64,000 nucleotides of DNA. Origin: Paramoeba atlantica. Lineage: Eukaryota > Protista > Discosea. The DNA lies in the NCBI GenBank assembly GCA_977017575.1, contig CDRNVI010000029.1, positions 558,001-622,000 of the forward strand. Direction: 5' to 3'. This document shows, in pieces, positions 5,861 through 52,586 of this stretch (position 1 is the stretch's first letter; each line of letters starts with the position of its first letter). The notes below the pieces were generated by a model, which was given only the letters and a program-made list of their open reading frames with translations, had not been told where the DNA came from and ran no database searches. A program made the translations under genes and the position numbers.

Positions 5861-6527
5861 ACGAATAACTTCGTCACTGCATGCTTACCATTTATTTTTT
5901 GGACCTATTTAAGGTGCACTTTCCTTAAAATTGTCTTTCGCTCTTTGTTAAAGCTTCTCTGGCGCTTTCTTCCTTTGAGGCCGTGATTAATGATTGATAA
6001 GAAGAGGCACCGTTGCTTTTAAACCCCCCGCACACTTATTATTCCGGATTTTTTCGCCCCCATTTTCCGGAATAATAAGTGTGCGCGAACACTTATTATT
6101 CCGGAAATTTTAGGGCCGTGTACTGCCATCCACCTGTTTCAACCCTCTAAGCATCATATTTTTGCTACTTACACGACTCCGTTCTATCATTTTTCTTTGC
6201 ACAGGTTGTAAAATGTTTGACCGTATTTTCTTGTAAGGGTGGTAATGGGCAGGAGATGGGATTCCCGTGAGGGCTAAGGTGCTTTTCCTCTAGATTTGCC
6301 AATGTTTCTTCACCCCCTTTAACATGAAAACAAAGAATATTTCGAAGAACTTGCCCAATACGCTGTGCGATATAAACGTTTGTCCAGATATAGCTTTCGT
6401 AATCAACCTGCCCCCCCTAATACAGTATGCGCCTCGGAAGTTCGAAAAACGCACAGGACATAAAAGCGCCGCGAAGCAACGCATTTTTTTTTTTTTTGGG
6501 GGGGGGGGGGGGGCGGGTTCTCCACCC

Positions 6528-8778: not shown

Positions 8779-9668
8779 ATTTTCAGCCATGCGCGACGTC
8801 GTTAGTGGGAAAGAGTTTGCGAAGCGGGAGGATTTTGCGAAGCAGCTACCACACCGAGATCACCTTTGCCTTTCTTTTGCACTCAGTCCCCGATCAATTT
8901 TTTTGTGGGGCGTGGTATATCTGGATAAGACTACCACACACATATAGAAAGGGCGGTAGAGAGGCATGGTTCATCTGAAGACGATCTGTGGTATGGTATG
9001 GTACAGTGATTTAGATCCTCTAAAGGTAAAAACTATTTTATCGCCTAAACGGAAACCCAGTCGCCTAGCGTTATTAGTTAAAAAGATTTACATTGTCCTG
9101 TACAGAAAAAAACAGTGTCATCGTTTAGAATAACTCCTCTTATCTTCCTCTTCGGTATGTTTTTGCTCTGAAGCTAGTCCTAGCTTTCTGTAGCTTTCTG
9201 TGTGATCGAACACACGATTCAGAACTTTGATTGGGTCCGTACTATCAGGATTTATTGATGTTCTTGCAGTTTTCAGGATGTTTAAGTTTATATTGGATAC
9301 TCGCATACTATTTTGTACTAAAGCTTTTGCAGTAAAGGTCATACAAGTCAGCTCCTCTTTGAGTCTGTAAAAGATATTCGAGATGAGTGTTACTGGTGCC
9401 CGAGATCACTTGCCGTGTACTCCAAATTCTTACAGCTGTACATGAATATTTCGCTTTTTGATAATAATAATCGCCACAGCTGTGATCATAATTGTCCATA
9501 CTGTGACCCAACTTTTTATAAGCACACCCCCTCAATCTTTTTCATTATTCATTGATGATTTTATAACAAATACCTTTATTAATATTGAATCTATATTAAA
9601 TAGCTTACCACCAATAAATTTAACATTTTTTACTCGTGTCTTAATTACTTAATTTTTTCGATTCACCA

Positions 9669-9824
9669 ATGGGAGCAGTCCGTAGCCTTTCCATTAAATT
9701 AAAGCATGCGAAAAAGATGCGTCAGAACCGACCGGTGCCCTATTGGATTCGACTTCGCAACGTTCACGCGGTACGGTACAATTCTAAACGCCGGCACTGG
9801 AGACGTGGTAAGCTAGGGTGGTAA
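9669..9824 (+). CDS. RPL39: 60S ribosomal protein L39 (eL39), below the ORF-track cutoff
   Basis: Translated by hand: [51 protein letters not shown], 51 aa, with the QNRPxP-W and RYNxKRRHWRR signature. Confidence 0.95.
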
Positions 9825-10198
9825 GACGTTTGGCAAGGAGCAAAAAGAAGAAAAGAAAGCGTTTCAAGTGGTTAAGTTTCATGGAACAAAGGAATAAAGA
9901 TGTATTTGCCAAATGCAGGGCCGCTATACGGAGAACTGTCTTTATCTAACTTATGTGAACGGTTTCTTCCTCTTCTACGTACAATTTATTTGGCTCTTCA
10001 TTTCTCACTAAGTTGTAATATGTTTCAAGCATTTAATTTGTCTTCCAAGGACAAAATATTTGAGAGTTGTTTTTAATCCTTTTTTGCTTCAAGTATGTTC
10101 TAGCAGACATATGGGATTGTACCTTATTTTCACATTTTCGGCTATCGCAATCCTTATTTTACAGTCCATTCCTATAAATGACGTAGTGTGGGCATCAA

Positions 10199-10687
10199 AT
10201 GCCAGGCATTTTTTATTCTTCCGACTTTGGAAGTAGTTCGTCTCTCTCTGTATTTCGCGATCCCGTTGCATACGCGGCGGCCAGTGTTTTCTTACTGACA
10301 ACTGCAACACAAGTGTGGCCTAACACTTTTCTCGACCCTTTCTTTAGGGGAAAGATTTACTTTAGCTACCCAGCTCAACGATTGATGTTACCTGGGCTCG
10401 GCATTCCATTCTCCGGGTATTGTCTATCTTCGAACTTACTGCAAGACGGAGAACTTGTTCGGGGTCATTCTCTGTCTTTGCTTACTTGTATGTATATGAC
10501 ACTTTGGAGTCTACCAAGCCACAAGCTTACTATGTGGTATACTTCGATAGGTCTTAGCGCAATTATGCTTGGCTATTTTTACAATTACAAGGCGCTGGTC
10601 CTTTACACTGAGGGAGCACCGTGGTGGACGGAACAGGATTGGAGGGAAATAATTGGAGACAAAAGAAAACACGAAACTGTCGCGTGA
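10199..10687 (+). CDS. Hypothetical small multi-pass membrane protein
   Basis: 162 aa with several hydrophobic segments, on the gene strand. Confidence 0.65.
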   Translation: MPGIFYSSDFGSSSSLSVFRDPVAYAAASVFLLTTATQVWPNTFLDPFFRGKIYFSYPAQRLMLPGLGIPFSGYCLSSNLLQDGELVRGHSLSLLTCMYMTLWSLPSHKLTMWYTSIGLSAIMLGYFYNYKALVLYTEGAPWWTEQDWREIIGDKRKHETVA

Positions 10688-11031
10688 AAGTCGTTGCAAT
10701 TCAAGACAATGTAAATATCGCATCATACGCTAAAGTATGTATGTACCTTGCGTCATGTGCTACTCACAGGATGGCATTGCTACACATGGTACAGGGGTTT
10801 TCTGTACAGGATCTCTTCTAGGCCACGGTACTTATTTCGCTGCACTGCATACTTTTAGACATACAGTTGTAGTTCTCCAAATATGTTCTAATATGACTTT
10901 CTCTCTTGTCTACCACTCCGTGAAGTCGAGTGCTATAAGCTTCGTTAAGTTTTCCGCAGCTTACTGGATAAAAAATGAAACATTTATCAATTTATCTACT
11001 CTTCTAACATAAATTATCTGAGTTTGGCAGA

Positions 11032-12003
11032 ATGGTGGCTCTTCAATTTGCCGAGAAAAACCGCGAAATGCCGGAACAGTACTTTAACTATGACAATCTC
11101 GAAATCTCCTGGAGCAGTCCTGAACGGTACGAAATTGTACGCAAACTAGGTCGAGGAAAATATAGTGATGTATTTGAGGCAGTCGACACTTCTATTGGCT
11201 CATCGGTTGTTATAAAGGTTTTAAAACCGGTAAGAAAAAAGAAAATCAAACGTGAAGTAAAAATCTTACAGAACCTTATTGGGGGACCAAACATTGTTCG
11301 ACTGCTCGACACAGTTCAGGATCCTGCAAGTCATACTCTCTCACTAGTTTTTGAGCACGTTCGCAACGTCGATTTTCGCACTTTTTACCCGACCTTAAAT
11401 GACTTGCAATTGAAGCGGTATGTCTACGAACTGCTTCGCTCATTGCATTATAGTCACTCAATGGGTATCATGCATCGAGACGTTAAACCACAGAACATTA
11501 TGATTGATCCGACATCAAATACCATCCGGCTTATTGACTGGGGTTTAGCAGAATTCTATCATCCAGGAACGGAGTACAACGTTCGTGTTGCATCTCGCTA
11601 CTTCAAAGGTCCGGAGCTTCTTGTTAATCACATGAAGTATGACTATCGACTCGACATGTGGAGTGTGGGATGCGTATTGGCGGCTATTTTATTCCGCAAG
11701 GAGCCTTTTTTTCGTGGAAAAGACAACGTTGATCAGCTTGTCCAAATAGCTGCCGTGTTGGGGACATCAGATTTACAACGATATCTGGATCGCTACGACC
11801 TCAAATTGGATTCCAAAGTAGTCAAACTTATTGGCCTGCGTCGCAAAAAACCCTGGAAAAGTTTTGTTTCTCCAGAAACAGAGTGTCTCTGCACTCCAGA
11901 AGCTATTGATCTACTGGATCACCTCCTGCGCTATGACATGTGCGAAAGATTTCAATCGTTTGAGGCTATGAACCATCCGTATTTTTATCCCGTACGTCAC
12001 TAA
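11032..12003 (+). CDS. CKA1: Casein kinase II alpha catalytic subunit
   Basis: GRGKYSDVF, KKKIKREVKIL, HRDVKPQN, LIDWGLAEFYHPG, RVASRYFKGPEL. Confidence 0.97.
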   Translation: MVALQFAEKNREMPEQYFNYDNLEISWSSPERYEIVRKLGRGKYSDVFEAVDTSIGSSVVIKVLKPVRKKKIKREVKILQNLIGGPNIVRLLDTVQDPASHTLSLVFEHVRNVDFRTFYPTLNDLQLKRYVYELLRSLHYSHSMGIMHRDVKPQNIMIDPTSNTIRLIDWGLAEFYHPGTEYNVRVASRYFKGPELLVNHMKYDYRLDMWSVGCVLAAILFRKEPFFRGKDNVDQLVQIAAVLGTSDLQRYLDRYDLKLDSKVVKLIGLRRKKPWKSFVSPETECLCTPEAIDLLDHLLRYDMCERFQSFEAMNHPYFYPVRH

Positions 12004-12440: not shown

Positions 12441-13847
12441 ATGTCATCTATCCTAGGAATTCGACGGAAAATACGTAAGCCCCGGCACGCCGAAACCACC
12501 GGCAGGTATCTAGGCTTCGAACACACCCCTCTCCCCGCAGCTGTACACAAACACCCAGACACCTTACTACAAAATTGGACCCCCAATGCTCCACCCACCC
12601 TTCCATCCCCGAAACCTCACCACCCCCGCACCTGTCATCTCCATATCCTCAATCTCTTAAAACACAAACCTCCCTTCCCCTCCGCCCCCTCCCTTCAACA
12701 CTACCTCGACTGGGCCCACCCCCCCACCACCCCCTCCCCCACCCCCTCCCTTCTTCTCCACGAGTGGCATCCACGAAATGCCCCCCTCACCCCCACCGCG
12801 GTCCCCTACCACAGCGCACGGTTCCTTTGGTGGAGCTGCGCCACGTGCTCCGCGCCCTACCTCGCTCGGGTACGGCACCGCACGCTTCTCCGCGGCCCCC
12901 ACAGCCCCGCCTGCCCGCGCTGCGTTGCGGCAACCCACAGCCTGTGTCTCACCCACCCCACGCTCGCGGCCGAGTTCGCCGGGGCCCTCGTGGACCCGCT
13001 GTCCGGGGATGCGGTGGGGGCGCTCGGGGTGGAGGCCCTCACGGCGCTGGACATGGCGGTGGCGCGGTGGGGGTGTCACCGGTGTGGGACACGGTGGTGG
13101 GCGGCGGTGGTGGAGCGCGCGGGGGCGGGGGGGATGGAGGGGGGGGAGGGTGGTGGTGGTGGTGGTGGGGAGGAAGAGCAAGGTGGGGAACAAGGACGGG
13201 AAGGGGGGAAGGGGGGAGCAGAACAACCGATGGATTGTCCCACGTGTAGGGGGAGTGCCCCGAGGACGGGGTTGGTGGCGGGACGAGGGGTGGGGAGTGT
13301 GGGGGGGAAGAGAGAGGAACCGGCAAGGCTTGTGCCAGAGAAACCGTGTGAGAAGCCACAGCTGAGCGTTCCGGAAAGTGAGTCGTGTTCGAACCCCATT
13401 TTTGCGAATAGCATGTTGCTGAATTACCCGTTTTTGTACCAAGAAATGGATGAAAAATATTATCGCCACGTATCATGGAATCGCTTAGCGCGGATATCCA
13501 TCTTCTCGCGCGAACTAGCTCGTTGGATATGTATTCGGTGCTCTAAGTCATACGCGTCGTCTCCATTCGAACGAATCTTTTCGTCGAACAAGAGTGGTAG
13601 AATACCAACGCGAGAGGGTCAAAAAATACGAATGCGTGACCTTCCCATATGCTGCCCCAAATGTCGGTGGACCTCTGGATATGATCCTCTTGAACCTGTT
13701 TTGGGTCAAGAACAGACGGAACCTAACACACCCGCACCGAACTTACATAAAGTCAGTTGTCGCAGTAAGCGTGTCCCGGGTAGGTCCAATCCTTCATTCT
13801 TCAGTAGACGGTCTTACCCTCGGTGGGTTGATGATGCTGTAAATTGA
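12441..13847 (+). CDS. Zinc-ribbon repeat protein (DUF4379-like), possibly mitochondrial
   Basis: Three units of the type EW/EF...WxCxxC...W/Y.A...R...CPxC; first in-frame ATG at 12441; basic N-terminus. Confidence 0.7.
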   Translation: MSSILGIRRKIRKPRHAETTGRYLGFEHTPLPAAVHKHPDTLLQNWTPNAPPTLPSPKPHHPRTCHLHILNLLKHKPPFPSAPSLQHYLDWAHPPTTPSPTPSLLLHEWHPRNAPLTPTAVPYHSARFLWWSCATCSAPYLARVRHRTLLRGPHSPACPRCVAATHSLCLTHPTLAAEFAGALVDPLSGDAVGALGVEALTALDMAVARWGCHRCGTRWWAAVVERAGAGGMEGGEGGGGGGGEEEQGGEQGREGGKGGAEQPMDCPTCRGSAPRTGLVAGRGVGSVGGKREEPARLVPEKPCEKPQLSVPESESCSNPIFANSMLLNYPFLYQEMDEKYYRHVSWNRLARISIFSRELARWICIRCSKSYASSPFERIFSSNKSGRIPTREGQKIRMRDLPICCPKCRWTSGYDPLEPVLGQEQTEPNTPAPNLHKVSCRSKRVPGRSNPSFFSRRSYPRWVDDAVN

Positions 13848-19343: not shown

Positions 19344-19892
19344 ATGACTGCCTACGACCGTTTCTCTCTGCTGGACTTGTTTAGTCTAGGACTAACGAAC
19401 ATTGATCGTTTGACTGAAACGTATTCCGTCGGATTCTACGGGCTATATTTGACACAATGGCCAGAGTGTTCTATAATTGCTCGTCATTCAACCTCGGGCC
19501 AAAACATGGGTTACGTCATAGGAAAGGTTGAAGGAGAAGGAGAAGATTGGCATGGTCACGTTTCTGCAGTTACGGTAGCTTCACCATTTCGAAGACAAGG
19601 TTTGGCACGACTTTTGATGTGTTATATCGAAGCGGTTTCAGACAAACTTCACAAGGGGTACTTTGTAGATCTTTTTGTACGAAAATCGAATAATACAGCT
19701 CAAATCATGTATGAAAAGCTAGGTTACATAGTTTATCGGCGAGTCTTGAAATATTACCAAGGCTCTAAAGAGATTTCTGATGAGGATGCGTTGGACATGA
19801 GAAAACCAATGACAGCCAACACTTCTAGGAAGAAATCTGCTGTTATTCCGTTAAAGCATCCAATCTTGCCTCACCAGCTTGAGTGGCAATAA
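19344..19892 (+). CDS. NAA20: NatB catalytic N-terminal acetyltransferase
   Basis: LTETY, GY..GKVEG....WHGHVSAVTVA, FVDLFVRKSN, YRRV..YY, EDALDMRK; ATG at 19344. Confidence 0.93.
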   Translation: MTAYDRFSLLDLFSLGLTNIDRLTETYSVGFYGLYLTQWPECSIIARHSTSGQNMGYVIGKVEGEGEDWHGHVSAVTVASPFRRQGLARLLMCYIEAVSDKLHKGYFVDLFVRKSNNTAQIMYEKLGYIVYRRVLKYYQGSKEISDEDALDMRKPMTANTSRKKSAVIPLKHPILPHQLEWQ

Positions 19893-21020
19893 TCTTTCAA
19901 TGCAAGACAATGATTATGTAGTACGCGAAACTGAGCTGCGGGCGTCAACTTAGAGGCATACTTCGCAAAGGAAAATGTACCGCCCATTGAGTTTTGTACA
20001 TTATCGTTTTTTTTGTTAGCATTTTTTCTGAATGTCATCTCAAGCTCCACCCTGCAAAATGCTCCCGATGTTTTCCACAGTACGTTGCGTCCTTTCACGC
20101 CGCTGAAAAAAAATTCCTATGTTTCCTCAAGAGTGTGCGGCTTGAGGTGACATTAAACAAGTGCACAAAAATAATAATAACCTTTTGTCTCTTTGCTTTA
20201 CATTCCACCAATTTCTGTTTTTGTTCGACTGGTACCGACGCTGGGTACGATAGCTCGGCGAAGGGTTTTGTTTCATAAAATTATTGGACATTGTTCTCAC
20301 TAGTAAGCATGTTTTTGTCTTCCAAGCACTACGTCTACATCTCTAACGAACGTTTTGCCACGGTTTGCGTAGAACGCCGTGAAATTTCTTGTGCTCAGGG
20401 CGTGCCCATGAGCTAGGTTGACTAATGTGTGCGAGAGACTGTATTTTATGGCTCGGAGGCACAAAGTCATTGCTCAAACCGTGAGATGCAAAAGTGGACA
20501 TTCACAAACCGTGTACGTTACGAAGAGGGCGGTGGGAGGTCAGCCTTCTGACCTGGCTTGAGCACTGCAAGCAGTGTTCCGACTCCCATTATGAGCTGCG
20601 CCACGATTAAATTATTGCTTAACGCAATGGGCAGCAAAAAAGGTAGCAATGCAAAAAAAAGTATGGTGTATAAAATATATTCCAATTTACCTGTACGTTG
20701 CAATATGGCTCTGATAAGGGTGTAAAACATTTTCATAATGTTTGCTACAATGGGAATAATTGTGGTAAATGCTCCACAACGTTTTGTATTTGTCATCCGC
20801 AACGGTAATTAAATTATTTATGAATGTTGATTATTACTAAACATTTTCGAAGGGGGACACAAAAACGTATCGTATTGTCTGTTTAACCGCATACAATGTA
20901 GTACAACTACGGTGAATCACTTCCGCTTTAAAATTTCTTTTTGTACACCATGTAGCTTAGGAAAACGTTCTCGCATATTGTATATTACCATTCTGTGTTT
21001 ATTAGCATTCAGCTTTGTCA

Positions 21021-31585: not shown

Positions 31586-33662
31586 TTTCAAAAAAATGAA
31601 AAATCTAAAACATAATACATACTATGTTGTTCTGAGAACTGTTCTTTGTTCTCAGAACACCGAGAACACCATTCTATGAACCCAGTTTACTTGAAAGGTT
31701 TCGATGAGCTTTGAAAAATAAATCATCCAGCGAGCCGTTGTTGCATCGACTGCAGCGTAGAAAATACGCTTCCTATGGGCGGATCTGGAGAACATGATCC
31801 AGTCCCAGTGATTTTTATTACCAGAAAGCAGGCGACGCATGCCATCCTGTATGAACGACCGACATGCGAAAGCTTCATCCGAGTCATTAATTTCACCGAG
31901 AAGACTTTGTTGCTTCGAAATGTGACTTGTTGCTAGTTCCAATATGTCGTATTCATGTCGCAAGTAACCGGCGAATTGATACTGTTTTCTTACAGAGACA
32001 ATATCAACACGATTGGCCGCAAGTGCCCAATTATCAGCGATACACAGAGTACTATCAGTGAGGTGGCAGTGTCTGTCAGGGAAGACACAATCACATTTGG
32101 TGACCATAAGTAATCTCTTCTCCAAGCTAGCATTGTTGGCTCCTCAAGTTTGATGTTCATGCGTTCGTTGGCGCAGAGATACAGCCCTTGATGCGACAGC
32201 CGATATCATCGGCTCAATCCGTAATGACGGATGTCGCACCAAGTATATTAATCATGCAGTTGTACTGCAGAGATTAGCCCTGGACAAGTGAGCACGCCCA
32301 AAACGTGCTGCTTGTTCGGGTTTGCCGTTTCACTGAAAGCTGTGCACCTCCCACGTAGGGTTCTCGCGGTGCTGATATATTACGAAGCTTCCCCTGATAG
32401 CGCGCTGGGCCATTGTTTCCCTACATTCGGAGGCAAGGCTCTTGTCTCCTCCGAAAAGAGAGTTCAACGCGCGAGTGGTGGAGTTAAGCTTTCCTCTTGC
32501 ACCCACCTCAAAAACCAGTAAAAATGTAGATGGATTGATCAGCTTTCTCTGATTATAGATAAACGAATACTTTTGAACCTTCCGCTCATGAGCATCAGCA
32601 AAGTTTTCTTCCCATGGTGAGGTCAACTCGATGATGAATTCCGCCCCATTGTGCAACTTTAACCACCCGTCTGGTCTCAATTCAGTTTCTTGCGAGAGCC
32701 AGGCGGGAGGGTTTCTGTATTGTTGCAAGTCGAAGTGTAAGTGGGCCGTGTGGGGAGATGAGGACATGGCTTCCGCGAGTGTCGAAAGGGTGAGGTCGTG
32801 CCGGTAGTTGTATCTCCCTTGGCTTAGAGCTACCGAGCATCCCGTTAATATATGACGTGGTGTCTGCATGGCTTCTCGGCAAATTGGGCACTTTGCATCC
32901 GTGTGGGTGGATATACCCCATCGACGGAGGGACGCACGGGTCGGTAGAGGGGTTTGAGTCAATACGGATGCCGCGAAACGCGAGAGAGAAGGGCTCTTGA
33001 TATTGCATAGGGCAGACGCAAACTCTTTTGCTAACTCGCCTTCAGTGGCCATTTGAAACCATTGGCAGGCGATCGTAGTTCGTCGCTGCACAGACGCGGC
33101 GAGGAAACGCTCGTACTCGTCATTTACTGTCTGCCGTAACCGTCTTGGGCCGTCACGATTCTCGTAGAGCTGAACAGCTGGGCGGATGCGTCCGGATGAT
33201 CTCCTGTTTTGCTCGGTGGCAATCCTCTGTCTCAAAGCTTGCAAAACGGCGGGGTCGCGCGATCGATTCATTTGGGAAATAGCTGACGCAGTGCACTGCA
33301 GCCACAGCTTCGTTATACTGGTTATGCTCCATCCGCGTTCTGAGTAAATGAGCTCGCTTGTGGCGGTTTTCGCAATATTGAGCCACTTCCGTATACGTGT
33401 TGTCACTAGTTTTTGTAGACGGAGAACGAAGTTAAAGGTTAATCCAGGATTTACTGTGAGAACATAGCGCAGTCTGGAAATAATAGCATTATTATAAATA
33501 TATATGGTTATATCCACAGTCGTGCTGGTTGTTCGTGCGCACTTTCCGATATGTTATCCAACCACGTTCTCAATTTCGAGCGCAGAGATGAAAATAGAGT
33601 TTTGCCTTGCTGTGCTCCGGGTGCGAGAGTCATCCCCAAGAAGCAGCTACCCTTATCACATG

Positions 33663-34453
33663 CAGTAGTGTTCAGCCTCTTTTACCCCCCCCTACAGGTC
33701 TTGTAATTTGTCCGATTTTGGAAATATTTTGTATGGGACTGTTTTTTGACCCAATCGTTCCGAATCCGAGGTCCTTTTCACTCGTGGACACCTGTATCAT
33801 ACCTAAACCGGAAAAAAACTGCAAAAAAAAGTCGATGTTTTTTTCACAGTGCATTTTTTTAAAATTGGTACATTTATTTGTGATTCATGACGAAGAGGCA
33901 CCGCCCCCTGTGTTTACCTTCCTCCCGCGTGCGCCCCGAAATGCGCACGGCACTCGCAATCGATTACGAGCGACTTAAGTCCTATAAGGCAGTCGCAAAA
34001 CTCCAGCGATGTCTCGCCGCGTAAAGGATGTGCTGAAACCCCGAAACAGGACTCAACTTCGGGAGTCCATCATTGAACGTTTCGTTTTTTTCCGAAGATC
34101 AACCGGAAACGTTTAAGAATATCTTCCGGAACTATCGTAAACATTTACTTTTGGTCAAGGAGGCCAAAGGGCATATGACTAAATACTAGAGATTACTTTG
34201 TACTCTTTTTCCACGTCTTCTGACCTACTTTACTACTCATATTCATCCGGAAAATTCGAAAAAATGCCCCGAAAAAAGTCGCAATTAGCTTTTTTGACCC
34301 CTACCTGGCTAGGGGGGGGTAGGGGGTCGCTCGAGTGAAAAGGACCTCGGATTCGGAACGATTGGGTCGAAAAACGGTGTTATACCAAATATTTCCAAAA
34401 TTGGACAAAATACAAGACCTGTAGGGAGGGGTAAAAGAGGCTAAACACCACTG
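33663..34453. mobile_element. MITE family A copy 2, inverted, inserted in the HERO RT
   Basis: CAGTAGTG...CACCACTG|TA; removing it restores the frame IPHICDKGSCFLG. Confidence 0.9.
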
Positions 34454-34749
34454 TATGTGAGGAATCGGTTGTCCACAAGCCATAATACGGGGGCGATGGG
34501 TCATATATCCTCCCTCATGTACTGCCATGTGTTGCGTCCGACATTTCTTGACATTTAGCTGAAGACCCATGATGCCTAATGCCTTTATCAGGGCATTTGT
34601 TACTTGTTGCATTTCTCCTGGGGTATTGGTCATAATTGTTACATCGTCTGCGAATGCTTTGAGGAAAGATTGAGTGTCATTCCACACTATGCCAAGTAGT
34701 TTTATCATGCACTTATAGTGCAGAGATTTACTCATCATGTCCTTATCCC

Positions 34750-35269
34750 GCATACGACGGGTGGATCATGTGAGGTTTCGTCCTCGCCGGAGGTGTGCGG
34801 GTGCGGAGAGCTGGCGTCCCAGGTGCAGAGAGCTCGGTTGTCATGTGCAGGTGCAGAGAGCCGGATGCGTAATCCCCATATTACAGTTTCGGGGGCAATC
34901 CGGGTGCAGAGAGCTGCGACAGAGCCGAGGTGCGGAGAGCTGGGCGACCGCCAGGTGCAGAGAGCCGAGCCTCGTCGGCGGAGGACACGTCTAGTGGTCC
35001 TCAAGGGAGGCCACCGTGACGCATGGCCCTCTCGGAGAGGAAAAAGACAAGTCGAAAAAAAGCCGAGAGGGGGAAGCACACTCACTCCAGGGGAGTGAGT
35101 CGGGGAGGGGTGAAGTGGTGAAAGCGCGTCCCCTGCTTCAGCGACAAGAGGGACAGTTCCGACCTTAGTGCCGGCCGGCAACGGGCATAAAAATACAGTA
35201 AGAGTATGCCCGTTGCCGGGGAAAGAAAGGATTAACTCAACAAGGTACAGAAACTAGTTGGGTAGAGTT
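34750..35269 (-). ncRNA. Highly structured non-coding insert ending in an SL-like 32-mer
   Basis: Rod at 34780-34986 with six GGTGC(A/G)GAGAGC motifs; perfect 15-bp hairpin at 35175-35219; AACT...AGTTTCTGTAC....TTG on the minus strand at 35269-35238; it replaces conserved RT motifs. Confidence 0.55.
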
Positions 35270-38246
35270 GATCTTAGGTAGCGAAAGACTACTTCTATGG
35301 TGCTCCAGAAGCTCACACAAAGCCTGTGTATGCTCGATCGTTCCGTTGACCCCAGGTAAGAACCCCTGCTGTATAGTTGTATCTATGATTCCCGTGGATG
35401 TGACATGCTCAAGAATTCGATGGCTAATTATCGTGTGGAATAGTTTACCCAGACAGCTTGTGAGGCAAATTAGACGCCAGTTCCCAAGATTGCTGGTTTC
35501 CCCATCCTTATGTGTCAGAAGAGTGGCTCCTCGTTTCCAGCTATCGGGGCACGTACCGAAGGTAAGGAGGTCGTTGAAAGCCTGTGCTATGGAAGGATAT
35601 AGAGCTGCGCAGCGTTTTAAGACAGCGTTCCCAATGGTATCTGCGCCAGGGGCAGCGGATGGTCTCTTTGAAGCTATCGCCGCCTCGATGGCACTGCAAT
35701 CGATCTCAGCCCAATACATGTCTGACTGTACCTGAGGTCCCAAGAGCTCTGTGGGAGGAAGTCCATAGTTTTCTTGTGGGGTTTGCATGCTATTCCGAAA
35801 ATAGGTTGTGATTTCCTCCTAGGAGCAGTCCGGGTACTTGCCCCACCGCTGATCTGCCTCTTTCGTGTGCGCATCAAGGCATTCCCCAGCTGCAGTCCCA
35901 GGATTTCTTTGGAATCGCACTTTAGCCCAGCGCTTGGCGATCTCCTCTCGTTGTGTCCTGCTTTCTTCTGCATAGACTTTTAGCAGCTTACTAGCTTCTT
36001 TTATTTCTCCTTTTAAGCGGTCGCGTTCCACTCGTCCATGGCTGTATCGCAGTGATATTTTGAGCCGGCGGATATGGCCCTCCATTTGCTTGGCTGAACG
36101 GTCGGCTGCAAGGGGTCGAGATCTACGTTGGGCGCGTCCTGTGTGGGTGCGTAGGCGAAAGCCTTCCACTGCGTCAGCCTTGCACGCAGTCTCGTAGGCA
36201 CTCACCGCAATACTTGCAGTCAGAAGTTCTGCCTGGTGTTTAGCTTCATCTGCGGTAGTTGCAGGGCGCAGAAATTTCGCGCATCGCTCTGCTGCGCGTC
36301 TTTCGGTCTGCTTCCACTGATCGCTAGAAAAGTGAATCATAATTCTTCCTCCTTCAATGGACTTCAGAGTTCTTAGGAGGGATGCGCTCGTCTCTTCCTC
36401 GTTGTGCGTCCTCTGTGACGACATTATTCTGTTTGCGTTGCGTGATCGACGGCTCGGTGCACTGGATTGGAGCATTGACGGTTGTAGGGGTGGCTGTGGG
36501 GGTGATTGGGGGCTGGGCAAAGTGGTGTCTGGGCCATCTGCCACGCCGCGTGTGGTAGAAGTTTCGTTCGCGTGTGCAGGTGTTCGGCTTTCCGTCCGTG
36601 CTGTGCGGAGGTGCGCTTCCTCTGTTACGTTTGTTGCCGGTACTCTGTGTTCCGTCTCTGTTCGGTTTCCACTGTTCAGCGCAGTACTTGGACGAGTATT
36701 ACCATGATCATTTCGGGTTTGCGCAGTCTCTGGCTGTGCCTGGGTCACATGTTCAGTTGAGGGATTCGATTCGTCAGGGTGGATCTGCATGTACGACCCG
36801 GAGATAAGGCTACGCAGGCCCCGGAGCCCGGCCCACACGAGTGAGTTGACCACAGGTCGGACTGAGGAGGTGGACACACCATCCTTGCAGCACTTGTGCT
36901 TGCAAGTAGTTTTATCAAAGCATTTGGGTAAGCACGGGCGGAGCTGGGTTTGTGGTTCTGGAGCACGCGTGTTGTTCTCTATCGCCGGAGGTGTGCCGAC
37001 GGAAAGAGGGACTGATAAGGGTGGGGTTTCATTTCTTTCAGCGGACGAGGGTAACAGGTTCCTCTATAGCAGGTCAGCCACCGGTTTCACGATACCTCGC
37101 TGGAGCTTTGGTGACCACAGGTCGTTTTATCGCGGCAGGAGTGTTTACATGGCTGCTCTACGGGAGTTTTTACAAGGGCTGCGGTGGGTGTAGCTTGTTT
37201 CCCGTTCCCTGTCGTCAATGCTGTAGGTTCTGTCGCATGAGTTAGGGATATAGGGCCAGAATGGAGCACTGCTCGCTCAGGGATTAGGGACTCATGTGTG
37301 GCGTCTCGAGGCGGCGTTAGCGGCACACCAATTTTGCAGCATACGTGCTTGCAATGGGCTTTGTCCCGGCAGATGTTTTTACAAGGGCGATGTGTGGGCA
37401 GGATCGAGGCCATTGGGGAGGACTCGTCCGGGACTGTACTTGTGGGCTCGGGCATTAAATCCAGGGTGTCCGCTCGCTCTAGGCCGGGCGCTGGCTGAGG
37501 GGAAGGGAGGGGCGCGAGATCGTTTGAAAGCGGGATGCCATCGTTTGTGACTTTACAACATAGGTGTTTGCAGGTAGCTTTGTTGCTGCAATGGTGCGCA
37601 CATGGTCTCGTCCTTCGCAGAGTAGCACCGGGATCCGCGTTCGTGTTGTGCCGCGTCCGTATGCGATAAGACTCGTCGTAATCCACTTCTTTGAGCTTCC
37701 AATATGAGCCTTCTTCCTCGGTTGACTCGCGTTGAATAATCAAAATTTCATATCCCGATAATGCAATCATGCTCCGCCCTCCCAACTTCTTAATGGCGCG
37801 ACCTAGAGCTCCTGCCGAGGAATATGCGCCAGTGAGGTTCATGTCTTTGTCCGCGTATGCCGATGTCCAACTGGTGTGGCGGAAAGTCCGTTGTTCTCCA
37901 TCTACTTCACGGAATTTGATGTAATCGCAACATCTTTGGTCCATAACGTCACTTATGTTGCATGTTTGGATCAGAATTCCATCAGGTCGCTTGGCGCCTG
38001 ATTTTAAGGTTCGTGCAATAGAAAGTTCTGCCGTGAGTTCTGCATTAAAAGCCCCCTTTTCCGTTAGAAACTGTGCTGCTGCGTGGATGTGGGGAAAGTA
38101 GGCCCATTTGCTCGCTTCAGGGTGTCTAATGCGAATTGGCACTGCACTAGTGCGTGTCGGGCGAAAGCTTTCTTCGTGAAATGGCTCTGCGCTGGCAGAT
38201 CCTCGAGGGGTGGATGGACATGCCCCTTGTGGGGATAGCAGTTATA

Positions 38247-38822
38247 CGGTAACTAAAAAAAGTGTTCAAATGTTTTAACAAATTTTAATGCTTTTATATT
38301 TTGCAAAAGAGATTCAAAGGATAATGCAGTAGTATATTACAGTAGTATAGGCTGGAGTAGTGCTTACATTCCCACGTACTTAGACTTCGTCAATGATCTT
38401 ACTATAAAAAACTATGAAAGATGTAATGCGAGCCCAACACTTGAACACTTTTTTCACTTTTTTGAGATTACTTTTTTTTTGAACAAAACTTTGTCATACT
38501 TCACCCTTACCAAACCAAAATGACCGAAACGTAATACTTCGTAAGTCCCCTCTTCGCCCTAATTACTGCCCTCAAACGAGGGGGTATGCTACGGACAAGA
38601 GGAAGACATGCACTCGGAGGAAGGTCTGCCCATGCTTTTTGGGCGCGTTCCCAAAGCTCCAACATTCGTACGGGAGGATCTGGATGATCCGCAGTTGACT
38701 TTTTGAGCTCGCCCCATAGGTGCTCTACGGGATTTAAATTGGGAGACTTCGAGGGCCAGTCTAGGACACACAATTCTTGTAAACGAAGGAATTCCCGGGC
38801 CTACTCGTGTGCTTTGGATCAT
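38247..38822 (-). mobile_element. Tc1-family transposon 3' fragment with IR/DR-like end
   Basis: NDPKHTS, WPSKSPNLNPVEHLW, AVI.AKRG.TKY; end TA|CGGTAACTAAAAAAAGTGTTCAA with an inner AAAAAAGTGTTCAA copy (inverted) near 38443-38456. Confidence 0.85.
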
Positions 38823-39055
38823 TATGGACCACCTCTACCGACTGAGACCGAGTCGGTTGCAGTACGCCCCTCCGGCTGCGTAAACAGAGGGCGAGTTGCC
38901 TGGACCACCTCTACCGACAGAGTCCGTGCTAATCCCCTTGGTGCGACATCCGTCATTACGGATTGTACCGATGACTTAGGCTGTCGCATCAAGGGCTGTA
39001 TCTCTGCGCCAACGAGCGCATGAACATCAAAATTTGTCTAAAAAGCAAAAAAAAA
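38823..39055 (+). mobile_element. Short SINE-like element sharing the HERO 3' end
   Basis: 38938-39031 matches the reverse complement of 32149-32242; A-rich tail; 18-bp direct repeat at 38825 and 38901. Confidence 0.6.
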
Positions 39056-39261: not shown

Positions 39262-39370
39262 GCTTTTTTTTGAGGGTGGAAAAATTTTCACCCTCGACCT
39301 GGAACATATTACCCCCCCACTTATAGTGCCGTTTGAACGAAAACCTCGGCACTATAAGTGGGGGGCACAG
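39262..39370. mobile_element. MITE end, family B copy 2
   Basis: Reverse complement of 5744-5860. Confidence 0.7.
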
Positions 39371-41209: not shown

Positions 41210-42720
41210 TTATGATTCTGATAACAATAATAATAAAAAGAAGCAATCCAGGCCCAGTCCATTCGCGCTTTCCGGACCGGGTCTTTCGACCTCTCCACGG
41301 CCTGACTTGTGAACCCTTCGCTTGCTATATGGGAGGGCGCAGGCGCGGGCCTGTGTCGACAGCAACACGGCCGCGAAACAGGATGAATTTTTTTTATCCC
41401 CCGTAATACCAAAGAAGTTTGTGGCCTTGGTAACCTTCGATAGGACCCATCCCTCTTCAACTGCTTCCGTGGCGCCAATATACGCCCCCAGAAGTTTAAC
41501 GCCCCCCGGAGCATGTTGCATCCTGCTCCCCGAGAAGACCGAGTACAAGTCCGGGTGGCGGGTAGCCACCATGCACTTGGTCGTATTGAGCTTTAGGCCC
41601 AAAAACTTGATCTCCTCTTCCAAGGAGTCAAAGGCATTTACGCACACCCCGGGCTCCGCGGCTATGGTTTTATCATCCAGATATGCCCATAGTTTTAGAC
41701 AGCCAGAGTATTTTGCCGCCACGGCCGAGATGGCGCCCTGTATCCCTAAGGCAAAAAGGATGGGCGCCATCGGGTCCCCTTGTTTCACCCCCCGGGAGCT
41801 AGGGATGGCAATCCCCTCCCGCAGGTGGAGCTTGCTAGGGGTCCCGTACCCGAAAAGGGAAATGCCGATCATAGGGGAAAGGTTCGGATACCTTTTCAAG
41901 GCTCGGAAAATGGCCGCGCGGGAAATGCTGTTAAAGGCATTTTCCACTTCGACCGCCGCGGTCACCTCATCGGGTCTGTCGCGGAAGTGATCTCTCACTA
42001 CGACGTGCTCGCATCCTTGAGTGTATTGGGCTCCGAATTGGAGGCCCTGAAACACAGCAGGGAGGTGGTCTCTGACCTGTTCGAGGGCTAGTAGACCCGC
42101 GAGCTTCAAGATGCCCCCCCTCATGGCAATGGGCCTGTACGAGGAGTGGTGTCCCACTGGGGCCCCAGGCTTGTTAAAGAGCTTGAGGTTAGCTCCCGTG
42201 AGAAAATCCCTCATCGTGGGAGGGAGGGAGGGGGTGGGGATCCCTTGGATGATCCAAGTGACCACGTCCCTCGGGTCATCCTCCTGTAGGATGGGGACCA
42301 GGAGTTCCTTGGTCCATCCGGACGAGCCTGGCGCTCTAAGCGGCGCAAGGCTAGTTGCCTTTCGGACAACGTCTGCCGCCGACGGGAGGGGTCCATGACT
42401 TTCCTTGTCATAGACGAACTTGGGGGTGTTATAAGGACCTCCCGTAGGGTGGAGGCGTTCCACCTGTTCCCCCGCTGTAGCCGGGTTTGCCGACGGATCG
42501 AGGGGGCTTCCAAGATTTTAGCCGCCTTCGAGAAAGCCCCCGCCCGGATCAGCTCAGTGACTCGTTTGATAACAGAACGGGGGAAACTGTTGGTGAGGAG
42601 GGGAGTAGAAGCGATGGTTTCTGACCTCTCTAGGTTAGCCCGTTTCCGTAACTCCCTCGCCAACTGCCTCTGGGACAGCTTGTCCTCGGGGAAAAACAGG
42701 AACCGTTTAACCCCGAGGGG
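41210..42720 (-). mobile_element. CRE/SLACS-clade reverse transcriptase fragment
   Basis: G.FSKAAK.L, LHP, APGSSGW, RPIAM, QFGA....GCE, NAFNSISR, GVKQGDP, AYLDD, GLKLN..K, GVKLLGA.IG; one frameshift; RLE missing. Confidence 0.88.
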
Positions 42721-43415: not shown

Positions 43416-44424
43416 TCAATACTTTGTGTAACCGCCCTTGGCCGTGATTACCGCTTGCATACATCGCGGCATGCTTTCGACCAGAGTACGGCAGTATGCG
43501 GGGGATATGGTCTCCCACATTTCCCTGGAACGGTCCACAAGCTCCCCGATATTCGCCGGTGGCGGTTCAACTTCACCCAGCTTTGCCTTCTGTTGGCCCC
43601 AAAGATTCTCAATGGGGTTTAACTCCGGTGACTGCGGCGGCCATCCAGACAGAACTTGAACTCCCACGCTGGCGAAATGCTCCTTTGCAATCTTGCTGGT
43701 CTGTTTTGGGTCATCATCCTGCTGGAAGATAATTTTGCCCATGTTGTCACCCAGTTTTCGAAGTGAGGCGGGAAGGTTCTCCGCTAGTATGTCCTTGTAC
43801 TGGGAGGCGTCCGTATTACCTTGAACGATTTGAATGGTTCCAATACCATCTTTGGACATACACCCCCACGCCATTATGCTCCCCCCACCGTGCTTTAGAG
43901 TTCCTATGACGGTTCGGGCACTAGGTTCACCAAGCCTCTTCTACACCCAGTGAATACCATCAGATCCGAAACGGTTGATTTTGGTTTCGTCGGAAAAATA
44001 CAATGAAAACCACTCTTCCTTCCAAATATTGTGGTCGAGGGCAAATTTTAAATGCATAGCACGGTGTCTATCGCTCAGGAAGGGTTTTCGCTGACGCTTC
44101 CGACCCCCCAGACCATCAGAGCGCAAGATATTACGAATGGTTTCTGGCGAAACATTGCCGATGCCTTCACGGCAGAAACGATTCCGCACTCCCACAGGAG
44201 TCCTTTCCGCCCCGCTCTCAATTAGACGCTGAGAGCGCCTTATCGAGGTCTCAGAGAGCTTTCTACGGCGACCTCCCTTGTTGATTGGACGCGGCGTCAC
44301 GTTCATCGACCTTATTGTGCTCACTGCACCTCCCTTTCGGGATATTTTTCTATGTGAGTCACCATTGTCTATTATTTCATTGACTTGTTTTAGCTTTGAA
44401 TTCGACAAACGTAGTGGTATGTGG
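43416..44424 (-). mobile_element. Tc1 transposase pseudogene (DD35E spacing)
   Basis: GR.RKLS, VS..TIR..L, FSDETK, KHGGGSIM.WGC, QQDDDPK, WPPQSPELNPIENLW, KGGYTKY; single in-frame TAG at 43941-43943 where W is expected. Confidence 0.92.
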
Positions 44425-44965
44425 ATAATACAAAAATATATTGGTTTGGTGGCAATTCTTTTCTTATCTCTCAGTAAATATTTTTTACCATTTTTTTTAT
44501 TGGTTTCTATCGTTTTGTACCCAAGGTTTGTCAATGCCACCCCGGTTGTCGAGGTCCTGTCATGGTAAGTACTTGCCAAGGTCCTGACGAATATGAAGAT
44601 TATTGACCGATTGTGGTATAATAAATTTGGCTTACTATTCATATTATGAATAATAATAAGCAGTTGTGACATAACTGCGAGAGTTTGAAATCAAGGCCTT
44701 TAAGTCATTTAATATGTAGAATTTGATGTTTGTTTTAGAATTTCTAAGCGTAACCTCAGCCCACGTTTTCTTTAATCAAAATTAGCCGAAGGTAAGAGAC
44801 CACCTAGGCATTACTCACATTTTTACCTGTACTGTAGACATACCTAAATTTTTATCACTGTTTGACTTTCTGCACTGAATTTTCCTTATACGTAAGAAAA
44901 AACTCTTGAAACACGAGACTCACTATACTAGGGAAAACATTCGGATATTCCAGGAACCTTTATGC

Positions 44966-51977: not shown

Positions 51978-52586
51978 AGAAAAATCTCCAAAAGATCATG
52001 AATAATCTACTTTTTTGGGGGAAAAAGTTCGATTTTTCGGCAAAAATTGCGAAATTTTACACCGAATTTGGGCTGTTTTGTATACCTTACCAGTAGGGGC
52101 AGGAGTCGAATTTGTCGACAAAAACGTCGTAGAATGGTATCTGAGGTCCGAAATTCTCCAAATACGGTTTAGGAGTCGATTTTGGAAGAAGAATATTTTT
52201 CCTTTTTTTTGGGTCAAAAATTTTTTCCGCAGGCGTTGCCGCATCGTTATTGAGCGAAACGGATCTTCTTGTGGGTATTGAGGGTAATTTTTGACCATTT
52301 TTTACAGTTTTTCAACTTTGCAAATCGTGTTTTTGACCCTTCCATCAAATGGGGGTACCCCCCTAACCCCCGCAAACTGCGTATCCTAAAACATACAACT
52401 CTGCGAGAGCTCTCGAATGCGCTATTATTTCCCAATATCGGACAAATTTTACGAATTTTAGACCCCTCCCCATCATGGGATTTTCACCCCTGTATGTACA
52501 TCTACACATACTCTGTAAGTGTACAGTGTATATCAGCAGGGGATATTCTAAACCACAGTCCGAGTTAGCATTCCTGTAGCTAGATA

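Follow-up and report, generated by a model that had tools for sequence, protein, structure and literature searches.

The rod-shaped hairpin analyzed here, in which a 12-base motif occurs six times, is almost certainly a module of a retroposon that we call X, a dispersed and non-autonomous element of about 560 bp, and not an independent RNA locus, as which it could be taken from a preliminary description of this DNA. X is a mobile, multi-copy element with established ends, strand, and modular build. The features concerned are collected in Table 1, in which all positions refer to the window, the whole 64,000-nucleotide stretch of DNA that was analyzed. In the reading that we prefer, which we hold to be nearly but not quite probable, X is a non-coding euglenozoan retroposon, and the rod at its center acts in cis as an RNA module and reiterates the box by which the reverse transcriptase (RT) of a LINE would recognize its RNA.

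Table 1. Element X, its modules, and the neighboring retroposon features in the window.
Feature	Position	Strand	Remarks
A-type 3' fragment	32153..32243	-	has its own terminal box; directly past the LINE end
LINE terminal stem-loop box	32253..32273	-	77 nt past the last ORF; same type as the X box
Host non-LTR (LINE) coding region	32330..38142	-	reverse transcriptase and CCHC zinc finger; degenerate
Retroposon X, whole copy	34699..35256	-	about 560 bp, non-coding; dispersed copies; sense-strand fold
X 3'-terminal stem-loop box, 21 nt	34706..34726	-	sense TCTCTGCAC-loop-GTGCATG; 9 bases in common with the rod motif
X 3' tail, rod to terminal box	34727..34779	-	folds as its own hairpin
Rod hairpin	34780..34986	-	three symmetric internal loops, each of two facing 12-mers
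Motif copy 1	34800..34811	-	plus strand GGTGCGGAGAGC; faces copy 6
Motif copy 2	34822..34833	-	faces copy 5
Motif copy 3	34850..34861	-	faces copy 4
Motif copy 4	34903..34914	-	exact motif match; faces copy 3
Motif copy 5	34929..34940	-	exact motif match; faces copy 2
Motif copy 6	34954..34965	-	exact motif match; faces copy 1
X 5' structured module	34987..35237	-	several hairpins, one with a perfect 15-bp stem (35175-35219); common to the A-type family
Spliced-leader mini-exon remnant	35238..35255	-	sense 5' end of X; truncated in the window copy
A-type copy, 3' part	38825..39040	+	orientation opposite

Element X and its host locus

Eleven distinct DNA copies of X, 88–98% identical to the window copy and set in unrelated flanks, were found at other loci of the same assembly (ENA ERZ24900291), of which about 246 kb of DNA was examined; within the window no further copy was found. 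Six further contigs carry X by ORF matches alone, and one of these copies extends out of a PIF1-type helicase ORF; this ORF-based census registers only those copies that have a called gene of 0.55–1.75 times the query length. The ORFs of X have no Pfam match, and their only database relatives are other copies of X. The left (plus-strand) end is constant among the copies, and the two or three truncated copies are shortened only at the right end, the 5' end of the sense strand, which in the window copy (at about 35256) is uncertain by about 3 bases. As is characteristic of LINE-dependent retroposons, X occurs in dispersed copies, has a LINE-type 3' end, and has no coding capacity; the target-site duplications of such elements were not found, the sequences on either side of five full-length copies having no repeat of more than 5 bases in common. 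Such duplications are often absent where a LINE has a restriction-like endonuclease.

The fold of the whole element is far better than that of its shuffles, with z = -4.9 on the sense strand (0 of 100 shuffles) and -5.1 on the other strand, and in the 5' module five pairs have changed on both sides. A second non-coding, non-autonomous family, termed A-type, corresponds to the 5' module of X exactly to the base of the rod and then continues into a different core, so the rod is an exchangeable module.

Two other placements of X were considered and rejected. In locus L077, X might have been the 3' UTR of a plus-strand LINE, but it is complete there and split by three copies of a short repeat; nor does X recur at the corresponding position of this LINE at other loci, where the RTs close to its copies are not homologous. 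The repeat that splits X in L077 is a short interspersed element of about 380 bp, inserted at 9576-9955, 10348-10730, and 10790-11170, the first of them lying between the two copies of an 11-bp target duplication that differ at one position. A tRNA-like head, which this repeat seemed by eye to possess, was discarded when ARAGORN proved negative. In locus L071, X is adjoined by a small element (10540-11282) whose terminal inverted repeats are rich in G, and related pieces lie in the window at 39300-39365 and 52359-52497, the former being a near-perfect hairpin of similar sequence.

In the window, X interrupts the coding region of a LINE that has lost about 100 codons of its RT core at the insertion and that stops or frame breaks interrupt in at least four more places; the missing RT motifs are found in none of the three minus-strand frames of the X insert. 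Of the traits of R2/CRE/SLACS-type LINEs, this host has Pfam matches to RVT_1 and zf-RVT, no match to Exo_endo_phos, and a candidate restriction-like endonuclease motif that was seen in its last ORF by eye alone, a PDB sequence search of that ORF having returned nothing. In the PDB, the N-terminal part of the RT has matches in LINE-1 ORF2p and in R2 proteins. The first ORF of the LINE (37087-38142, minus strand) has no Pfam match and contains three Cys-rich repeats of the C-x3-C-x5-C-x3-C type, which could be a nucleic-acid-binding finger array. A 129-bp inverted duplication inside the LINE (33656-33784 and 34332-34460, 91% identity), one arm of which lies in the C-terminal part of the RT, is a sign of internal rearrangement.

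The other haplotype, L003, is 97–99% identical to window positions 32123-38209, with 33497-35452 replaced by 641 unrelated bases; since it is itself rearranged, it is not a clean empty site for X. Beside the LINE, L003 has an extra insertion of about 1.7 kb that contains an IS1595-type DDE transposase ORF. L001, at 100% identity, represents this locus again and supplies nothing new. A second, unrelated RT in the window (41210-42463) belongs to a different family.

The region from 32 to 45 kb of the window is a transposon island. Tc1/mariner-type ORFs are present in 43416-44672, with HTH_Tnp_Tc3_2 at 43941-44672 and a DDE_3 match on the allelic copy of 43416-43874, and the stretch 38507-38773 is mariner-like by eye only. 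The surrounding setting is gene-dense and intron-poor, with cohesin STAG, SNAPc3, and M18 aminopeptidase in same-strand arrays. In positions 1-31000, intron-poor genes form long same-strand runs like the polycistronic units of kinetoplastids and diplonemids; positions 6498-6517 are a run of G, and the tract 12715-12750 is rich in C. The best named relatives of the M18 aminopeptidase are from kinetoplastids, Perkinsela, and prokinetoplastid transcriptomes (45–48% identity), and the source DNA is therefore read as euglenozoan.

Nested pairing and conservation of the rod

The architecture first proposed for the hairpin, a rod with three two-fold-symmetric modules of two identical facing 12-mers each, is borne out. 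All six motif copies are in their reported places as exact plus-strand matches to GGTGCRGAGAGC in a scan of the window (Table 1); when up to one mismatch is allowed, seven matches occur, the six exact ones and one elsewhere, where about 0.4 are expected and none of 100 shuffles reaches seven. The loops are set apart by helices of 9–10 bp, a 14-pair basal stem closes the structure, and an apical hairpin caps it. Every one of the nested spacer pairings originally listed consists of standard pairs, and the full list of 48 spacer and 18 motif pairs contains no non-pair in the window sequence. The summed duplex energy of the nested spacers, apical hairpin, and flanks is -60.6 kcal/mol, compared with -43.1 ± 5.6 kcal/mol for shuffled spacers, and the observed energy is equalled by 11 of 5000 spacer shuffles with the flanks and by 58 of 5000 without them.

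Folding of both strands, which the preliminary description had suggested as a check, gives a divided answer. The minimum free energy (MFE) of the 226-nt region is no better than that of dinucleotide shuffles (z = -0.25 on the plus and -0.95 on the minus strand), whereas RNAalifold, applied to 10–11 copies, predicts the identical nested rod on both strands (-71 kcal/mol on the plus versus -59 kcal/mol on the minus strand). The case for the rod is thus its nested register, not its stability. On the sense strand, RNAalifold leaves the motif pairs as large symmetric loops; the central UGCA/UGCA helix that had been drawn in each of them can form, but RNAalifold picks it on neither strand.

Comparison among homologues, another check suggested at the outset, upholds both the register of the motifs and the pairing of the spacers. 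The six motifs stand in the same register in all 11 copies, and 94.4% of the cells of the rod structure are paired across copies, compared with 32–50% in controls with slid partners. Three rod pairs (six cells) have changed on both sides, and the observed values are reached by 0–1 of 500 shuffles; these compensatory changes lend moderate support, because only two lineages contribute all three. Retention of the six motifs is by itself weak evidence, because the copies are young and related. The motif columns are nevertheless significantly less variable than their surroundings: 3 of 64 non-CpG motif columns vary, and elsewhere in X the figure is 98 of 389 (Fisher 7e-5), so that the motifs are about fivefold less variable. 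The changes at motif position 6 are CpG transitions.

It is rather unlikely, though not far-fetched, that the rod is a neutral relic without function, in which slippage or template jumps of the RT on the terminal box gave rise to tandem boxes and partly palindromic spacer units that persist because the copies are recent. Such a history would fit the right arm, whose units form a 26-bp tandem repeat with 78% matches, and the left arm, whose spacers are likewise similar to each other; it would also fit the resemblance of the motif to the terminal box, the divergence of the copies by merely 2–12%, and an MFE no better than that of shuffles. The roughly fivefold lower variability of the motif columns relative to other non-CpG columns of the same copies argues against it, as do the three long-range pairs that have changed on both sides, and direct motifs combined with nested, mutually complementary spacers are unobtainable by tandem duplication alone.

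Sense strand and the two ends of X

At its 3' end, X carries a terminal stem-loop box of the same type as its host LINE. This box occurs 17 times in 246 kb, every time at the end of an element (LINE, X, or A-type); its alignment has 14 invariant columns and a stem that is 98% paired, with two of the five pairs covarying across the three families. The sequence GTGCAGAGA is found in the terminal box of X and in four of the six rod motifs, and the chance of this nine-base identity between motif and box is, by our estimate, of the order of 2e-4.

At the 5' end, the leader of the X copies has 16 bases identical to published 39-nt euglenozoan spliced-leader exons, and both end in TTG (PMC3795323). 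The leader sequence from the loci matches the text of 55 papers, and all 15 of those listed concern trypanosomatids and their spliced leader. The leader meets the body of X at three different points, one of which lies just past a pyrimidine tract and an AG inside the longer form. Varying junctions of this kind would be expected if the template RNA had been trans-spliced repeatedly, and an origin from a spliced-leader RNA gene is another possibility. In locus L074, a second partial leader stands just upstream of the X leader. Spliced-leader-type heads of up to about 36 bases are also seen in several retroposon families (L071 17784-17824, 2308, 2464, and 6123; L073 4264 and 10992; L072 10630; L079 17460), and one leader-headed element is LINE-like, its first ORF starting about 37 nt further on.

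The covarying 3' box in common with the LINE and the spliced-leader core at the 5' end identify the minus strand as the sense strand of X, and the RNA motif is therefore the pyrimidine-rich GCUCUCYGCACC. The purine-rich G/GAGAG loops of the original proposal consequently belong to the opposite strand, the loops of the likely RNA being pyrimidine-rich.

A functional plus-strand RNA is improbable. It would be a rod with purine-rich loops, antisense to the retroposon, and its role would be to dock proteins or to give rise, as a long hairpin, to small RNAs directed against the element. The plus strand folds somewhat better by the RNAalifold energies given above, its spacer helices contain 23 G.U cells (valid on the plus strand only) versus 13 A.C cells (valid on the minus strand only), and the A/G switch at motif position 6 leaves pairing intact on the plus strand alone, where it preserves a U-R pair. 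Both ends of X, however, mark the minus strand as sense. The cell counts are not decisive as a test of strand, the G.U count being biased because the structure was derived from the plus strand; the position-6 changes are the CpG transitions already mentioned; and large loops every 10 bp would make a poor small-RNA precursor. Hardly credible, too, is a DNA-level feature, whether six direct sites to which a protein binds on DNA or a stretch prone to cruciform formation, with an incidental RNA fold, for although pairing is equally possible on both strands and the direct motifs within each arm are spaced 22–28 bp apart (about two helical turns), the element spreads via RNA, all its other modules show RNA-type covariation, compensatory spacer changes are unexpected of a site array, and 246 kb of this genome contain no other occurrence of the motif.

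A possible docking array and related elements

Under the preferred reading, that of a cis-acting RNA module, the RNA of X would be transcribed from the minus strand and would consist of a spliced-leader-derived 5' end, a structured 5' module of about 250 nt, the rod, and a short tail ending in the stem-loop box in common with the autonomous LINE. The rod would carry six copies of the 3'-end sequence that is putatively bound by the RT of the partner LINE or by its RNA-binding ORF product, and would present them pairwise in three two-fold-symmetric loops. Each facing pair of motifs could join in a short UGCA helix with single-stranded CUCUC ahead of it, mimicking the terminal element twice in a two-fold-symmetric arrangement. 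That the rod works in this way, as a scaffold with multiple protein-binding sites, is possible but doubtful, the proposal being drawn from sequence. Were several LINE proteins captured by each non-coding RNA, X would for that reason compete well for them. In the roughly 246 kb examined, no autonomous LINE with the rod came to light.

The fullest form of the proposal is unlikely. In it, the rod would be a new kind of RNA docking array that displays two copies of the 3' box per loop and loads several LINE-protein molecules or dimers, in retroposons templated by a trans-spliced, spliced-leader-capped transcript. Neither a docking array of this kind nor a trans-spliced template is known to have been described for trypanosomatid retroposons. 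X may be a natural example of a LINE parasite assembled from exchangeable RNA modules, namely leader, structured head, core, and terminal box, with one core, the rod, apparently built by symmetric reiteration of the recognition box. A rod that loads several LINE proteins would illustrate the way in which non-autonomous elements gain an advantage over their partners.

The rod was not initially recognized as a member of a known family, and it has no match in Rfam. At the gathering threshold, neither the window nor two other X-carrying loci gave a match, and at E up to 10 the region 34000-36000 gave five chance-level matches, none of them in the rod and none a ribozyme. A public pattern scan of viral contigs for two motifs 8–38 bases apart yielded no hit, and 67 metagenome loci with two motifs at this spacing were rejected as unrelated minisatellites or chance pairs. 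In the literature, the motif has only primer-like chance matches. For a classical SINE head (tRNA, 7SL, or 5S) on X, ARAGORN and Rfam were negative, and the head is the spliced-leader core.

The closest kinds of element to X are the trypanosomatid RIME, NARTc, and SIDER, for which we know of no description of a rod with iterated motifs. Like them, X is short, non-coding, dispersed, and euglenozoan, and its ends are shared with autonomous LINEs of the same genome. RIME, NARTc, and SIDER are reported to have 5' and 3' ends in common with autonomous LINEs, ingi and L1Tc (PMC8190864, PMC1874656), and a 77-nt Pr77 head and unspliced transcripts are reported for these families (PMC8190864). Unlike the Pr77-headed trypanosomatid elements, with which it was compared by description, X starts with a spliced-leader core, and, unlike the partners of RIME, NARTc, and SIDER, its own partner looks like a CCHC-finger LINE without an AP-endonuclease match.

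In stringent LINE-SINE pairs, such as the eel UnaL2 and UnaSINE1, a common 3' stem-loop is recognized by the reverse transcriptase of the LINE. X resembles these pairs in its short terminal stem-loop with invariant sequence and covarying stem, present in autonomous and non-autonomous elements alike. It differs from them in that part of the box is repeated six times in a separate long hairpin, and recognition by the enzyme is here putative.

The likeness of the rod to retroviral export elements, raised by analogy in the preliminary description, holds for architecture. The constitutive transport element (CTE) of simian type-D retroviruses is a hairpin with identical internal-loop sequences on opposite arms, which are related by two-fold rotation and form equivalent docking sites, and the X rod similarly has three loop pairs with identical sequences on opposite arms. 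The resemblance is one of architecture alone, since the search for kinship with the CTE gave no sequence or Rfam match. The CTE has one pair of loops in place of three loop pairs, and the X rod has pyrimidine-rich sense loops and belongs to a protist retroposon; we know of no export role for it. The companion analogy to kink-turns, in which tandem sheared G.A pairs come after a three-base bulge, fails on the sense strand, because the facing sides of each loop both read GCUCUCYGCACC and offer no G.A pairs; the predicted loops are, moreover, symmetric.

The spliced-leader heads suggest, as far as sequence can indicate, that trans-spliced RNAs may serve as templates for retroposition. This would mean that in this euglenozoan the templates of retroposons are excised from polycistronic transcripts via trans-splicing, in contrast to the unspliced, promoter-driven transcripts reported for trypanosomatid elements. 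Retroposed genes of dinoflagellates carry relic spliced leaders. The present elements are like these in that genomic copies start with a spliced leader, which would mark a trans-spliced RNA as the template; they are unlike them in that the carriers are retroposons (X, A-type, and a LINE with 2A-like peptides) and not cellular genes, and in that the host is euglenozoan. In locus L071, two NPGP motifs like those of 2A self-cleaving peptides lie in an ORF of a LINE-like element (19453-20499, minus strand), and after them comes a motif resembling a Cys-His finger.
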